64,000 nt of DNA from Mytilus californianus (taxonomy: Eukaryota): assembly GCF_021869535.1 (NCBI RefSeq), contig NW_026262734.1:21762001-21826000 (forward strand). The letters run 5' to 3'. This document shows positions 9,243 through 15,087 of this stretch, one piece after another. The notes beneath the pieces are model-generated. The model was given only the letters and a program-made list of their open reading frames with translations. It ran no database searches and was not told the DNA's origin. A program made the translations under genes and the position numbers. Each line of letters opens with the position of its first letter. Positions within the stretch are counted from its first letter, which is position 1.

Positions 9243-10291
9243 CTGAGTGGATTCGAATGGCGGATGAAGCATATATAGAAGGAGACGCTTACATTATCTA
9301 TTGCCCCAGTAACTTTTTTTTTATCTGGAATTGCGTATTCTAAATAGATTTACGAGATTTCAACTTAGGTATTTACCTCAAACTGGCTGCAATACATTTC
9401 TCATTTCACAGCTTTATATTTGTCAGTTGCCTCGTCCACAAAGACATTGTTTTTAAAGAACACCTTTAACCAAAACAAATAAAAACGTATAACCGATATC
9501 CCCTGTTCTTGTTTTACTCAAGTGGTCAAAATCGGGAACATAAACGTAAAAGATTTTTATAGCAATTTCACATATAAATGTATTCATTTTACCATAATGT
9601 TATTCAGCGCGATGCATTGCTGTTGAAAACATAAAACGTAAACTATTGCAAATCATTTTTGGTTTTTGTTGTAAAACTTCAAATCAAATGACACCCTTTA
9701 AACATTAGTTTAGTATTTCAAAGACAAGACCAAAAAAAATAGCGTTACTTACGGTAGCATTTCGGTTTTGGTGAAGAATATCAATCTTAATCACTTGTTT
9801 TAAATGACTTGAAATTGCCAAAACATATCAAAATTACAGAATTGACATCTTACAATGAAGGTTGAAAGACATTTTGAAATTAACCCTGCTGTTAAATAAA
9901 TTTAAAGGGAATTGTCCCTACCTTTATATATATATATATATATAAACAAGTCTAAATTGAAAACAACGTTCAAACCTATGATTGCGTTGGATAAAAACCG
10001 CAATTTTTATACGTGTGCATGCAAAACAAATTTCTTGGTAGAGTGGTCTAAATACAGCACAAACAACATTTTCCAAAAGACCAAAAAAAGTGAAAAAGTA
10101 TATTTTAACAAAACGCATTTGACTAGCAGGTCGAACAACGGATGTTCTTAAACCCTGCTGACTGCCATGGCGATTGCCAAATAAACGGATCACCAGATGT
10201 AAAAATGGATCTTATTAATTAAATACCAAAAAGAAAACAATAAACTTGCGGAAAAGATGGTATACCGCAAACATGAGGTGCAAAAATTTGT

Positions 10292-10335
10292 ACACCATAT
10301 CCGGATTTCGACAATTAATGTCTCTTCAGTGATGT
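10292..10335 (-). ncRNA. Minimal type I hammerhead ribozyme, unit 1
   Basis: acauca-CUGAAGA-gaca(uuaau)uguc-GAAA-uccgga-UA|ugguguc-type fold: helix I acauca/uggugu, helix II 4 bp, palindromic helix III AUCCGGAU; predicted cut between 10298 and 10297. Confidence 0.9.
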
Positions 10336-10824
10336 TAGGAATCGAAACGGTATTTGGAAGGCCATATAATTTACCTCAATTTGGGATTGACTCTTGAATT
10401 TTGAAGAGTCAAAATAGGATGAACGGATCATATAAACCCGAAGGCAAATATAATACAAGCCCAAACGAAAAAATATAAACAAGTCTAAATTGAAAACAAC
10501 GTTCAAACCTATGATTGCGTTGGATAAAAACCGCAATTTTTATACGTGTGCATGCAAAACAAATTTCTTGGTAGAGTGGTCTAAATACAGCACAAACAAC
10601 ATTTTCCAAAAGACCAAAAAAAGTGAAAAAGTATATTTTAACAAAACGCATTTGACTAGCAGGTCGAACAACGGATGTTCTTAAACCCTGCTGACTGCCA
10701 TGGCGATTGCCAAATAAACGGATCACCAGATGTAAAAATGGATCTTATTAATTAAATACCAAAAAGAAAACAATAAACTTGCGGAAAAGATGGTATACCG
10801 CAAACATGAGGTGCAAAAATTTGT

Positions 10825-10868
10825 ACACCATATCCGGATTTCGACAATTAATGTCTCTTCAGTGATGT
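10825..10868 (-). ncRNA. Minimal type I hammerhead ribozyme, unit 2
   Basis: Identical to the 10292-10335 motif. Confidence 0.9.
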
Positions 10869-11357
10869 TAGGAATCGAAACGGTATTTGGAAGGCCATAT
10901 AATTTACCTCAATTTGGGATTGACTCTTGAATTTTGAAGAGTCAAAATAGGATGAACGGATCATATAAACCCGAAGGCAAATATAATACAAGCCCAAACG
11001 AAAAAATATAAACAAGTCTAAATTGAAAACAACGTTCAAACCTATGATTGCGTTGGATAAAAACCGCAATTTTTATACGTGTGCATGCAAAACAAATTTC
11101 TTGGTAGAGTGGTCTAAATACAGCACAAACAACATTTTCCAAAAGACCAAAAAAAGTGAAAAAGTATATTTTAACAAAACGCATTTGACTAGCAGGTCGA
11201 ACAACGGATGTTCTTAAACCCTGCTGACTGCCATGGCGATTGCCAAATAAACGGATCACCAGATGTAAAAATGGATCTTATTAATTAAATACCAAAAAGA
11301 AAACAATAAACTTGCGGAAAAGATGGTATACCGCAAACATGAGGTGCAAAAATTTGT

Positions 11358-11401
11358 ACACCATATCCGGATTTCGACAATTAATGTCTCTTCAGTGATG
11401 T
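11358..11401 (-). ncRNA. Minimal type I hammerhead ribozyme, unit 3
   Basis: Identical to the 10292-10335 motif. Confidence 0.9.
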
Positions 11402-11890
11402 TAGGAATCGAAACGGTATTTGGAAGGCCATATAATTTACCTCAATTTGGGATTGACTCTTGAATTTTGAAGAGTCAAAATAGGATGAACGGATCATATA
11501 AACCCGAAGGCAAATATAATACAAGCCCAAACGAAAAAATATAAACAAGTCTAAATTGAAAACAACGTTCAAACCTATGATTGCGTTGGATAAAAACCGC
11601 AATTTTTATACGTGTGCATGCAAAACAAATTTCTTGGTAGAGTGGTCTAAATACAGCACAAACAACATTTTCCAAAAGACCAAAAAAAGTGAAAAAGTAT
11701 ATTTTAACAAAACGCATTTGACTAGCAGGTCGAACAACGGATGTTCTTAAACCCTGCTGACTGCCATGGCGATTGCCAAATAAACGGATCACCAGATGTA
11801 AAAATGGATCTTATTAATTAAATACCAAAAAGAAAACAATAAACTTGCGGAAAAGATGGTATACCGCAAACATGAGGTGCAAAAATTTGT

Positions 11891-11934
11891 ACACCATATC
11901 CGGATTTCGACAATTAATGTCTCTTCAGTGATGT
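11891..11934 (-). ncRNA. Minimal type I hammerhead ribozyme, unit 4
   Basis: Identical to the 10292-10335 motif. Confidence 0.9.
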
Positions 11935-12342
11935 TAGGAATCGAAACGGTATTTGGAAGGCCATATAATTTACCTCAATTTGGGATTGACTCTTGAATTT
12001 TGAAGAGTCAAAATAGGATGAACGGATCATATAAACCCGAAGGCAAATATAATACAAGCCCAAACGAAAAAATATAAACAAGTCTAAATTGAAAACAACG
12101 TTCAAACCTATGATTGCGTTGGATAAAAACCGCAATTTTTATACGTGTGCATGCAAAACAAATTTCTTGGTAGAGTGGTCTAAATACAGCACAAACAACA
12201 TTTTCCAAAAGACCAAAAAAAGTGAAAAAGTATATTTTAACAAAACGCATTTGACTAGCAGGTCGAACAACGGATGTTCTTAAACCCTGCTGACTGCCAT
12301 ATATATATATATTAAAAATTAAATACACAAAAAGAGTTTTAA

Positions 12343-12956
12343 GGTAGATGGGGTGTCTAAATTATAATCCATAGAATTTTTTAATAATTTGCCAAAATGT
12401 AGTTTATATCATGCTTTTTTAAAAAAAATAATAAAAAGAATGGGTCACGGGCCTTATTTTCACGCTACAGGTTGTGAAAAATTGACAGATTTTGTAAAGA
12501 TTATGCATGGAAAACCCAATTTTCTGCCATAAAATGAAAACTACACCATAGAATTTTGAGATAAAATATGAGAAGATAGGTCTTATAGTATGCTTTCAGA
12601 TAAGAAAAAGAAAAAATGGGGTCACCGGACCCGTTTTCTTGCTACATAATAAAATAGGTAAATTCCTAACACATTCTATTGTAAAAGTAACATTATGTGA
12701 ATTATCTGCCCTTACATTTGAGTTGCCTCCCCTTATGTGGCAAAGTTGGAAAAAATAGAATCAAACAAAAGTATTCTGTTTTTTTGTAAAAAAACAACCA
12801 TAAATATGATAAAATATGTCATTTTCTATATTGAAATGAATATTCTTACACATGAATTACCACCTACTCTCAAAATTTGCACCTTTTATTATAAATCTAG
12901 ACCGACTGTTTTCTGGTATTTCAAAATCCAAGATGGAGGAAGACACCCTATCTACC
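12343..12956. mobile_element. 614-bp MITE with TTAA target duplication, Kolobok-like
   Basis: TIR GGTAGATGGGGTGTCT / AGACACCCTATCTACC (15/16 match), TTAA at 12339-12342 and 12957-12960; the empty site is present in the inverted arm near 13555-13570. Confidence 0.85.
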
Positions 12957-12966
12957 TTAAAAGCAG

Positions 12967-13011
12967 CATTGTCTAGCGCTTTCATCCATCTTGGGAATTT
13001 TCAAGACTATG
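12967..13011 (-). ncRNA. Variant (U3-A8) minimal hammerhead in the PLE pseudo-LTR, left arm
   Basis: cauaguc-UUGAAAA-uucc(caagau)ggau-GAAA-gcgc-UA|gacaaug; lies downstream of the GIY-YIG stop codon; helix II closing pair is U.U in this copy. Confidence 0.65.
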
Positions 13012-13141
13012 AACGTCGTTATGAACGTCGTTATGAACGTCGTTATGAACGTCGTTATGGGGAACACATTAGTATTATGACGTAACGTCATTGTTCGTAA
13101 CATATAAGTAGTATGACGCAACGTTATTGTTCATTTAACTA

Positions 13142-13469
13142 CTAAGCATTAAGCATGGCGTCAAACACTTTTATGAATTTTCTTTCTAGTTCTTTATGGT
13201 ATTCTTCTGTTGGTTCCGTACATTTGAAGAACGGGAAAAATTTGAATTTTCCTCCCGCACAAATGTCTAAATGTTCGCTCAACGGAATTTGTCTGTACTT
13301 GGGTTGCCGTATTTGCTGTTTATGGATCCTGACCCGTTCACACACACACTATTTCCTGTTTGACCTATGTAGTTTTCTTTACAGTTGACACATGTTATAC
13401 AATAGAGTAAATTTTCTGATTTGCAAGTCATATTTGCGTTTACTGTAAATTTCTTACCGTTTTTGAAAT
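13142..13469 (-). pseudogene. C-terminal GIY-YIG endonuclease of a 5'-truncated Penelope-like element
   Basis: FKNGKKFTVNANMTCKSENLLYCITCVNCKENYIGQTGNSVC / ERVRIHKQQIRQPKYRQIPLSEHLDIC...ELERKFIKVFDAMLNA*; one 2-nt (GT) slip frameshift near 13340-13349. Confidence 0.88.
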
Positions 13470-13471
13470 AT

Positions 13472-13597
13472 TACTAATGTGTTCCCCATAACGACGTTCA
13501 TAACGACGTTCATAGTCTTGAAAAGTCCCAAGATGGATGAAAGCGCTAGACAATGCTGCTTTTAAAACTCTTTTTGTGTATTTAATTTTTAATATAT
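13472..13597 (+). mobile_element. Inverted pseudo-LTR at the 5' junction of the PLE
   Basis: Reverse complement of 12311-13074 once the MITE is removed; the 12-bp repeat has 2 copies here versus 4 in the left arm. Confidence 0.85.
13511..13555 (+). ncRNA. Variant (U3-A8) minimal type I hammerhead in the PLE pseudo-LTR, right arm
   Basis: cauaguc-UUGAAAA-gucc(caagau)ggau-GAAA-gcgc-UA|gacaaug; helix I 6/7 paired, helix III palindrome AGCGCU, predicted cut after 13548. Confidence 0.75.
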
Positions 13598-13631
13598 AAT
13601 TCTGTACACCGCTTGAAAAGAAACTTTTTTT

Positions 13632-13664
<33 letters not shown>

Positions 13665-13667
<3 letters not shown>

Positions 13668-14378
13668 ATTCATTTTGTCATATCTGGTGATCCGTTTATT
13701 TGGCAATCGCCAATGGCAGTCAGCAGGGTTTAAGAACATCCGTTGTTTGACCTGCTAGTCAAATGCGTTTTGTTAAGATATACTTTTTCACTTTTTTGGT
13801 CTTTTGGAAAATGTTGTTTGTGCTGTATTTAGACCCCTCTACCAAGAAATTTGTTTTGCATGCACACGTATAAAAATTGCGGTGCTTATCCAACGAAATC
13901 ATAGGTTTGAACGTTGTTTTCAATTCAGACTTGTTTATATTTTTTCGTTTGGGCTTGTATTATATTTGCCTTCGGGTTTATATGATCAGGTTCACCCTAT
14001 TTCCACTCTTTCAAAATTCAAGAGTCTATCCTTAATTGAGGTAAATTATATGGCCTTCCAAATACCGTTTCGGTTCCTTACATCACTGAAGAGACATTAA
14101 ATGTCGAAATCCGGATATGGTGTAAAAAATTTTGCACCTCATGTTTGCGATATACCATCTTTTCCGCAAGTTTATTGTTTTCTGTTTGGTAATAAATTAT
14201 TATAAGATCCATTTTGTCACATCTGGTGATCCGTTTATTTGGCAATCGCCAATGGCAGTCAGCAGGGTTTAAGAACATCCGTTGTTCGACCTGCTAGTCA
14301 AATGCGTTTTGTTAAAATACACTTTTTCACTTTTTTGGTCTTTTGGAAAATGTTGTTTGTGCTGTATTTAGACCCCTC
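13665..14378 (+). repeat. About 1.3 units of a 539-bp variant of the retrozyme repeat, inverted relative to 9941-12300
   Basis: gatccgtttatttggc recurs at 13689 and 14228; starts immediately after (TA)n at 13634-13664. Confidence 0.88.
14079..14124 (+). ncRNA. Minimal type I hammerhead ribozyme, 539-bp variant
   Basis: uacauca-CUGAAGA-gaca(uuaaa)uguc-GAAA-uccgga-UA|uggugua; helix I 7 bp. Confidence 0.9.
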
Positions 14379-15087
14379 TTTATCCTTCTTATTCACTATT
14401 TTGAAAAAATATATAAAAAAATCAGTTTTCAGCATGTTTAAAAATGTATTATTTAGCTACTTTTTAAATAGATACGCCGTAATTATATCGCAAATTCAAA
14501 TGTACAAAAGATGTTTATCACCGAAAGCGTGACACTGTCTTATTTAACAATGTTTTGCCACATTTCAGAAAAATAGTCTATGTACGATAACAGAAATTGC
14601 AATTAACAGATTTTTTTTATCACTTTCTCAATGATAAGATGTTGGGAATTAGTTGTGTTATTCTTTTTGTTTTTTGTTTTAGTTTCTATACATGTTTTTG
14701 AGGACCAGAGTAAAATGATGTCAACAGAACATCTGAAATTCGGGAAAGAGAGGATACTTATTCCAGAAGAATTTTCGCACAAAGCAATTTCAGAAATAAA
14801 ACTGCTTATTAAATTTGTACACAGTCTGATCTGTTTTACGAGTGTTTTTACTATGAAAGTAAAATTGAGTAGGGCATTTAAAAGGAACATATCAGAATAC
14901 ACGGCAAAAATTCATATTTCATTTGAAGAATTTTCTCTTTTCCTGTAAAATAATAAATTCTACGGTGCATAAAAATTGGTTTCTTGATTTACCACAGATT
15001 GATTTTGAATATTTATGCAATGCGTACGAAAGTATTATTGAGGTCTTTCCTTTCACTATAAGGAAAGACCTTACTGTATTTCTTCTG

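Follow-up and report, generated by a model that had tools for sequence, protein, structure and literature searches.

The question here is how animal retrozymes find their way back into DNA; the earlier case for a helper rests on co-occurrence and on pseudo-long terminal repeat (pseudo-LTR) homology in frogs. A locus of Mytilus californianus raises the question in an invertebrate. Within a 64,000-nt stretch of genomic DNA (contig NW_026262734.1, positions 21,762,001–21,826,000, assembly GCF_021869535.1; the whole stretch is referred to as the window), two tandem arrays of a hammerhead-bearing retrozyme flank the remnant of a Penelope-like element (PLE), and (TA)n microsatellites separate the three blocks. 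The original prediction, made from the sequence alone, had proposed the PLE and the retrozyme of this locus as a candidate helper and its parasite. Did a PLE move the retrozyme, and if so, which one? With moderate confidence, we read the locus as a (TA)n microsatellite struck repeatedly by target-primed integration of the Penelope type, the retrozyme being a passenger of (TA)n-specific PLEs. To the earlier case the genome adds thousands of (TA)n-fused insertions with an exact 3′ start, a PLE-like target and architecture, and an intact candidate helper, which belongs to a family other than that of the local PLE.

Retrozyme junctions were collected from the 1.65-Gb genome by a pattern scan that allowed two mismatches and required (TA) repeated at least four times. 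This yielded 6,347 canonical 3′ ends (...CAATTTAGACTTGTTTATA) fused directly to (TA)n and 14,073 internal unit-to-unit junctions, with zero matches in reversed-pattern controls. In all, the family has about 20,400 units, which take up 0.66% of the genome. Ends of the window PLE family behave likewise: each of its 25 distinct pseudo-LTR ends continues into (TA)n. The suggestion, drawn from the shared boundaries in the window, that both families insert at (TA)n is supported genome-wide.

The positions of the ends, taken from 34 retrozyme loci, are informative about how these insertions were made. At 32 of 38 array 3′ ends the retrozyme adjoins (TA)n, and 30 of the 38 lie at unit position 528–533, despite seven TATA sites per unit (p = 7e-19 versus uniform use). 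A start at this one site indicates that recognition by the enzyme goes beyond TA microhomology. Among the 5′ ends, 32 could be observed; they are spread over positions 1–476, and 19 of them also adjoin (TA)n. No poly(A), a signature that would have spoken against the original prediction, was found on the retrozyme insertions of these loci. Head-to-head inverted insertions with their 3′ ends pointing outward, as in PLEs, occur on contig C99 at 130.57 Mb and at 5.236 Mb. With a fixed 3′ end and variable 5′ truncation, the insertions look target-primed. The predicted hammerhead cleavage site lies at unit position 175/176, far from the 3′ end, so the arrays would have been copied from multimeric or circular RNA.

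By its features the repeat is a retrozyme of the metazoan non-LTR class, which lacks an LTR, a PBS and a PPT: it is arranged head-to-tail in tandem, contains no open reading frame (ORF) of note, has a GC content of 34.5% and carries a conserved type-I hammerhead, although its unit of 533/539 nt falls outside the approximately 170–400 nt of published retrozymes, a size range that is probably no requirement. Units are 98.6% identical within arrays and 95.0% between arrays. Arrays outside the window contain units that differ by 1–2%, while the left array of the window shows 0 differences in 2,360 nt and is very young; rolling-circle copying is possible there, and not required.

Within the window, reading of the sequence from 9500 to 15000 and a repeat search give the same element order, which bears out the layout described originally: (TA)10, the 533-nt unit ×4.43 (minus strand), (TA)7, a truncated PLE with an inverted arm, (TA)16, and the 539-nt variant ×1.3 (plus strand). 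The parts are as follows.

9925–9944, no strand: (TA)10 run that adjoins the left retrozyme array at its 3′ end and into which the array's own terminal TATA merges
9940–12300, minus strand: left retrozyme array, 533-nt unit ×4.43, from the repeat search; units 100% identical, 34.5% GC
9940–10472, 10473–11005, 11006–11538 and 11539–12071, minus strand: full units of the left array
12072–12300, minus strand: 5′-truncated unit of the left array (unit positions 305–533)
12299–12312, no strand: (TA)7 run separating the left retrozyme 5′ end from the PLE 3′ end
12306–12342, minus strand: distal piece of the PLE 3′ pseudo-LTR, short form without tail; 100% match to positions 1667–1703 of the reference copy
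12343–12956, no strand: non-autonomous terminal inverted repeat (TIR) element (a miniature inverted-repeat transposable element, MITE) of 614 bp, with 16-nt inverted ends GGTAGATGGGGTGTCT / AGACACCCTATCTACC and a target duplication TTAA (or TA)
12957–13471, minus strand: 5′-truncated PLE body with a GIY-YIG endonuclease remnant, 3′ untranslated region (UTR), TATGAACGTCGT repeats and a U3-A8 hammerhead-like motif
13008–13059: 12-mer TATGAACGTCGT ×4.3 in the arm of the PLE body
13431–13279 and 13345–13142, minus strand: ORF pieces of the GIY-YIG remnant, with one frameshift between them
13472–13633, plus strand: inverted copy of the PLE 3′ end, with the 12-mer ×2.3, a U3-A8 hammerhead-like motif and a 33-nt tail
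13487–13514: 12-mer TATGAACGTCGT ×2.3 in the right PLE arm
13601–13633, plus strand: 33-nt tail, present on the right PLE arm only
13634–13665, no strand: (TA)16 run that separates the PLE tail from the 5′ end of the right retrozyme
13666–14378, plus strand: right retrozyme variant, 539-nt unit ×1.3; 5′ end at unit position 258, non-canonical 3′ end at unit position 433

Two details of the first picture had to be corrected. The left pseudo-LTR is split by the TIR element, which had been overlooked and which severs the distal piece (12306–12342) from the remaining left PLE arm. The empty site of this element is visible in the uninterrupted right arm, and the TIR element entered the PLE arm after the PLE had arrived. 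The second correction concerns the right array: its 3′ end at 14378 has no (TA)n and falls at a non-canonical unit position, six bases past an internal TTTAGAC. Other non-canonical retrozyme 3′ ends follow GTTGTT, so the 3′-end rule is not simple. The right array, on the opposite strand, is 93–97% identical to the left one; the two partial units that it contains overlap, with 95% identity between them.

The repeat search also recovered the palindromic PLE arms (12957–13035 and 13487–13565, 99% complementary), which enclose the minus-strand ORF remnant with its GIY...YIG motifs. The 12-mer TATGAACGTCGT, located just upstream of the hammerhead-like motif, differs in copy number (4.3 vs 2.3) between arms that are otherwise 99% identical. 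RNA-seq reads map to the TIR element on both strands.

What kind of PLE is this remnant? The Pfam match of its GIY-YIG stub is weak (E=0.07). The ORF pieces are 91–96% identical to the C-terminus of a 502-aa ORF at another locus of the same genome (L035), which encodes a reverse transcriptase (RT), a CX4CxxC linker and, at the C-terminus, a GIY-YIG endonuclease (EN), in this order. That ORF is in turn colinear with residues 410–853 of an intact 905-aa PLE (E=4e-72). The 67-aa EN piece of the window gives no significant match to the 905-aa PLE by BLASTP alone, and its homology to that element holds because it is bridged by L035. On this sequence homology, the window element is a 5′-truncated canonical EN+ PLE. 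The CX4CxxC linker type is assigned to Neptune and Nematis (Craig et al. 2021, PMC8557442).

At the level of the family, a single ORF joins RT to a C-terminal GIY-YIG domain; the window copy keeps the EN only, in about 520 nt of the 3′ end, followed by an inverted copy of the last ~160 nt. The family also shows the pseudo-LTR architecture with an inverted 5′ copy and a one-sided tail of 30–40 bp. Genome-wide we found 55 of its 3′ ends, mostly in head-to-head pairs 50–650 bp apart, with the tail on one arm only, which is a PLE trait (Craig et al. 2021, PMC8557442). No intact copy was present among the candidates scored; only two copies reach the RT, and the best has 502–538 aa open. In the longest copy, with the 502-aa ORF, the N-terminal ~400 aa are missing and the RT motif RFIDD is changed to RFLDY. 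The local copy cannot supply enzymes, because its RT is absent and its EN is frameshifted. A short non-autonomous PLE unit with a shared 5′ end was considered and rejected, as the first 14–24 nt of the query come from the inverted arm and longer copies exist.

A better candidate source of enzymes is present elsewhere in the genome. The 905-aa PLE occurs at locus L061 as tandem 3,169-nt units with two identical 905-aa ORFs (L061:1166-7052, minus strand; contig C115, 940500–948000), in which RVT_1 and the GIY-YIG domain at the C-terminus score above the Pfam cut-offs. Dozens of copies of this family have open frames of 905–911 aa with near-identical scores, and 633 of its 3′ ends are fused to (TA)n. 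This abundant and intact family is the best helper candidate, better than the broken local copy. Its 3′ UTR contains an atypical hammerhead-like motif, UUGACA-CCGAAGA-A-GGCU...AGCC-GAAA-UAU-U/UGUCAA, with a C at core position 4.

The 3′ termini provide a possible link between these elements. The motif TAGAC stands 3–5 nt ahead of (TA)n in the 905-aa PLE (...TTTTATAGACTTCTATA-(TA)n), in the retrozyme (...TTTAGACTTGTTTATA) and in a tRNA-like short interspersed element (SINE; ...GTTTAGACGAATTATA), while the 3′ end of the window PLE family has no TAGAC box. In a simulation, a 5-mer shared by three of four tails has p of about 0.005, for a motif that was noticed after the fact. The SINE has 1,191 3′ ends (...GCTGATGTTTAGACGAATT) at (TA)n genome-wide, and a PLE-mobilised SINE is possible from these termini. 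In its head, A and B boxes are recognised by eye only, and ARAGORN called no tRNA there. The SINE was seen at the right flank of the L061 PLE, in reverse complement, and at L016/L023 (contig C1, about 85736030–85736490).

We tentatively raise the possibility that UAGAC, 3–5 further nucleotides and UAUA form a 3′ code that guides a (TA)n-specific Penelope RT/EN, so that one intact PLE would drive itself, the retrozyme (~6,300 insertions) and the SINE (~1,200). The 3′ ends of the retrozyme, the 905-aa PLE and the SINE border about 17% of the (TA) runs of at least 14 bp (~13% + 4%), and these three families may have shaped the microsatellite landscape of this genome. If the proposal is true, families with the 3′ code would border roughly a fifth of long (TA)n runs and may lengthen or create them. 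The code would then be the first recognition signal defined for a PLE, and the pairing with the SINE the first such partnership.

The original prediction had also placed seven hammerheads in the locus, all pointing outward from its centre. The Rfam search returned no hammerhead between 9500 and 15000, neither at the gathering threshold nor at E≤10, probably owing to a helix III of 1–2 bp. The motifs were therefore located by a custom descriptor (core, helix II hairpin, GAAA, short loop 3, U-H and helix I) with a shuffled control; Markov-shuffled windows gave 0.29 matches per 64 kb expected by chance.

10292–10335, minus strand: canonical type-I hammerhead, A17/H17 at 10298
10825–10868, 11358–11401 and 11891–11934, minus strand: identical copies of it, H17 at 10831, 11364 and 11897
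12971–13007, minus strand: mirror U3-A8 motif of the left PLE arm; a U.U mismatch (G-to-U change) at the helix II closing pair is the only reason that the descriptor failed
13515–13551, plus strand: U3-A8 core variant motif of the right PLE arm, descriptor match
14078–14125, plus strand: canonical hammerhead of the right array, A17 at 14117

The outward polarity holds for all seven. Only five, four in the left array and one in the right, have the canonical type-I core, with helix I of 6–8 bp, CUGAAGA, helix II of 4–5 bp, GAAA, a palindromic UCCGGA loop 3 and predicted cleavage after A17. This form is described as the usual one among metazoan type-I hammerheads functioning as dimers within tandem transcripts (Cervera and de la Peña 2014, PMC4209133). 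The motifs in the PLE arms are U3-A8 variants with a 4-bp helix II and a palindromic GCGC, for which minimum free energy (MFE) folding favours a competing hairpin. A U3-A8 covariation was described in the pseudo-LTRs of Schistosoma PLEs, and pairs of opposite-strand motifs 100–700 bp apart are reported in the same paper (PMC4209133). All seven are predicted motifs, and by sequence the two U3-A8 copies represent this variant known from PLEs.

Across the retrozyme family, the hammerhead core is invariant in 60–62 of 62 units, and the hammerhead region together with the last ~50 nt, the 3′ terminal region, is the best-conserved part of the unit. The hammerhead region is nearly invariant among units, leaving too little variation for an analysis of helix covariation. 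The monomer RNA folds moderately better than its shuffles (z -2.2), and at this value a clear rod fold was rejected.

The retrozyme is transcribed. Reads of three raw RNA-seq runs map to its unit, as does sequence from one transcriptome assembly; the depth over the PLE stub is about zero in the raw runs. Two runs have the first mate on the plus strand by approximately 5–15:1, which implies a minus-strand, hammerhead-carrying RNA if the libraries are dUTP-stranded. In two runs labelled as another species, depth rises 5–10 fold over an ~80-nt hammerhead module (11889–11968), and the reads continue on both sides into unrelated sequence as loose ends. The hammerhead module alone is common to the retrozyme and a different, more highly expressed retrozyme family.

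How often do the two elements stand together? The genome contains 46,266 (TA) runs of at least 14 bp, a count for which the reverse control is the same as the other phase. About 13% of these runs are bordered by a retrozyme 3′ end, and about 18% when 5′ ends are included. Among 23 distinct loci of the window PLE family, 14 have a retrozyme within 1.5 kb, and with the window left out, 10 of 22 are in direct contact with one through (TA)n. A null model in which both elements merely share the target predicts 18–33% adjacency, depending on which came first, and against it the 10 of 22 give p 0.003–0.15. Compared with random placement the adjacency is overwhelming; compared with a shared target the excess is at most about 2-fold. 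Physical stacking alone is weak evidence, because both elements use the same scarce target and fill a large share of it.

The retrozyme also adjoins other PLEs. Of 11 retrozyme arrays sampled regardless of PLEs, three lie next to other PLE families, and the 905-aa PLE stands beside retrozyme arrays in unbiased samples (C57, C130). Contig C1 holds 27 3′ ends of the 905-aa PLE, and 4 of them have an exact-match retrozyme 3′ end no more than 800 bp away, compared to 0.03 expected at random and about 2 under a shared target. As to polarity, same-orientation junctions, in which a PLE 3′ end, (TA)n and a retrozyme 5′ end follow one another, are more frequent than tail-to-tail ones, at 10:4 (p=0.09), and the window shows this arrangement on both sides.

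What the data show is the anatomy, the genome-wide tally of junctions, a 3′ end that is fixed, transcription of the retrozyme and a candidate helper that is intact; from these we infer the acting RT/EN, a multimeric or circular template and an order of events as follows. One integration would have left the heavily 5′-truncated canonical PLE with a 3′ arm inverted head-to-head and a one-sided tail of ~33 nt, which is the usual layout of the family. Further events would have left the two arrays of the non-autonomous hammerhead element, a non-LTR retrozyme. Each insertion would split the microsatellite, so that the boundaries become (TA)n, and the TIR element would have landed later in one PLE arm. 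The hammerhead-bearing strand would represent the retrozyme RNA, the copying of which would start at one internal site (...UUUAGACUUGUUUAUA), primed by nicked (TA)n; a multimer or circle as template would account for the presence of several units and for a 5′ stop at random. Intact (TA)n-specific PLEs would provide the enzymes in trans, with the 905-aa family as the best candidate.

The order of events is suggested by divergence. Over the roughly 116 nt in which they overlap, the two PLE arms show a single base difference; they also have unequal copy numbers of the 12-mer, and one of them carries the later TIR insertion. Compared with 0 differences in the left array and 5% between the right units, these unequal ages, based on few sites, favour serial events. 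The general claim that a PLE mobilises the retrozyme thus survives in part: the shared target, fixed 3′ end, 5′ truncation and PLE-like architecture are consistent with PLE enzymes, while the local PLE drops out as the helper.

Several observations weigh against this account. In the RNA-seq reads, RNA ends do not accumulate where cleavage is predicted, and junction reads cannot separate circles from tandem DNA, so neither self-cleavage nor circularity follows from them. Most of these reads are 90–99% alike (many 90–95%) and may derive from related species or families. Units of other arrays differ by 1–2%, so that rolling-circle copying of one circle is not required. A sensitive blastn comparison of the retrozyme with the two PLE families found no significant similarity outside the hammerhead core, a result which also rules out the retrozyme as a pseudo-LTR derivative of either the window family or the 905-aa PLE. 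The TAGAC box is a short motif found post hoc. The 10:4 orientation bias is a hint of what template switching would predict, and the reverse transcriptase may itself produce or extend the (TA)n, which would then not be a pre-existing target.

It is unlikely that the elements share nothing more than a target, with the retrozyme moved by the RT of a long interspersed element (LINE) or spread as a satellite at the DNA level, through unequal crossing-over or extrachromosomal circles, at fragile or recombinogenic (TA)n. The lack of homology between the retrozyme and PLE pseudo-LTRs would fit such an origin, as would adjacency near the shared-target expectation and the tRNA-like SINE, which likewise ends in (TA)n. 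The higher identity within arrays (98.6%) than between them (95.0%) also resembles satellites homogenised by crossing-over. However, 6,347 dispersed junctions with one precise 3′ end and variable 5′ ends are the mark of target-primed reverse transcription and not of unequal crossing-over. Poly(A) is absent, head-to-head inverted retrozyme copies with outward 3′ ends occur as in PLEs, and a (TA)n bias is documented for PLEs (PMC8557442).

We give little credence to the view that (TA)n is the product and not the target, i.e. that a telomerase-related PLE RT recopies the terminal UAUA and creates a flanking microsatellite, which then attracts later insertions. The retrozyme, the 905-aa PLE and the SINE do all end in TATA, junction runs reach 54 bp, and a considerable share of the 46,266 long runs is bordered by these 3′ ends (~13% by those of the retrozyme, a further 4% by those of the 905-aa PLE and the SINE). 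On the other hand, 19 of the 32 variable 5′ ends are at (TA)n as well, which fits a pre-existing run and not 3′ slippage, and the literature treats (TA)n as a target bias (PMC8557442).

It is improbable that the window PLE family itself is the helper, or that PLE and retrozyme cDNAs were joined in one integration by RT template switching from retrozyme RNA to PLE RNA: the 14 of 23 loci with a nearby retrozyme, the 10 of 22 in contact through (TA)n and the 10:4 junctions, with the same arrangement on both sides in the window, are set against a shared-target null that already reaches 18–33% (p 0.003–0.15), a retrozyme that is equally adjacent to other PLE families, 55 PLE 3′ ends versus 6,347 retrozyme insertions, a best family ORF of 502 aa with RFLDY and no intact copy among the candidates scored, a local copy without RT and with a frameshifted EN, a retrozyme that lacks pseudo-LTR homology and has a 3′ terminus unlike the family's 3′ end, and block divergence (0 differences, 5%, a TIR-split arm) that points to different ages.

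Passage of the retrozyme on (TA)n-specific PLEs, the reading we favour, can be compared with systems already described. The non-LTR retrozymes of metazoans (Cervera and de la Peña 2020, PMC7229834) are, as here, non-coding AT-rich head-to-tail repeats that are transcribed. They carry the same type-I hammerhead with a 6-bp helix I, 4-bp helix II, short helix III and a palindromic loop, and they likewise occur in a mollusc genome that also holds PLEs, with a mussel family of 350–390 bp. Their reported units are 170–400 nt, compared to 533–539 nt here, and they are circular, self-cleaved RNAs, whereas the present family is known from DNA repeats and RNA-seq coverage. The window retrozyme further differs in that its insertions share one exact 3′ end, vary at the 5′ end and adjoin (TA)n. 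Microsatellite targeting of retrozymes is not mentioned in PMC7229834 or PMC7761336 and receives only a passing remark in bioRxiv 10.64898/2026.07.22.740005.

Canonical EN+ PLEs (PMC4209133, PMC8557442) share with the window family the RT, a CX2-5CxxC linker, the C-terminal GIY-YIG domain and 5′ truncation. They also have the inverted 5′ copy with two opposite-strand hammerheads 100–700 bp apart, to which hammerhead-like motifs correspond in the window, the one-sided tail of 30–40 bp, the microsatellite insertion bias and the U3-A8 core covariation. The window copy consists of the last ~520 nt and an inverted arm only, and its family is Neptune- or Nematis-like by the linker alone. A preference for (TA)n is reported chiefly for Naiads (PMC8557442), whereas the window and 905-aa PLEs are C-terminal-EN elements.

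LINE-SINE partnerships are alike in combining an abundant non-coding passenger with a rarer coding element that uses the same target and has a similar 3′ terminus, here TAGAC N3-5 TATA, a box that the tRNA-like SINE carries too. Such partners share a tail of 30–80 nt; here the likeness extends over 5–9 nt, and the partner would be a PLE. In a survey of bivalve SINEs, PLEs were not considered as partners (PMC11481361).

A link between PLEs and retrozymes goes back to a proposal of 2020 (PMC7229834). In 2026 Li, Clavereau and Pollet (bioRxiv 10.64898/2026.07.22.740005) took it up with vertebrate data and put forward the same hypothesis of retrozymes as non-autonomous PLE passengers. Their evidence is co-occurrence in vertebrates and pseudo-LTR homology in Xenopus. 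Here such homology is absent, and the evidence, which comes from an invertebrate, is that the elements share a target, the architecture of their insertions and a short box near the 3′ end. Novel here are integration-site evidence for an invertebrate and the exact site at which the 3′ end starts, along with the scale, about one long (TA)n run in eight being bordered by a retrozyme, and a candidate recognition box.

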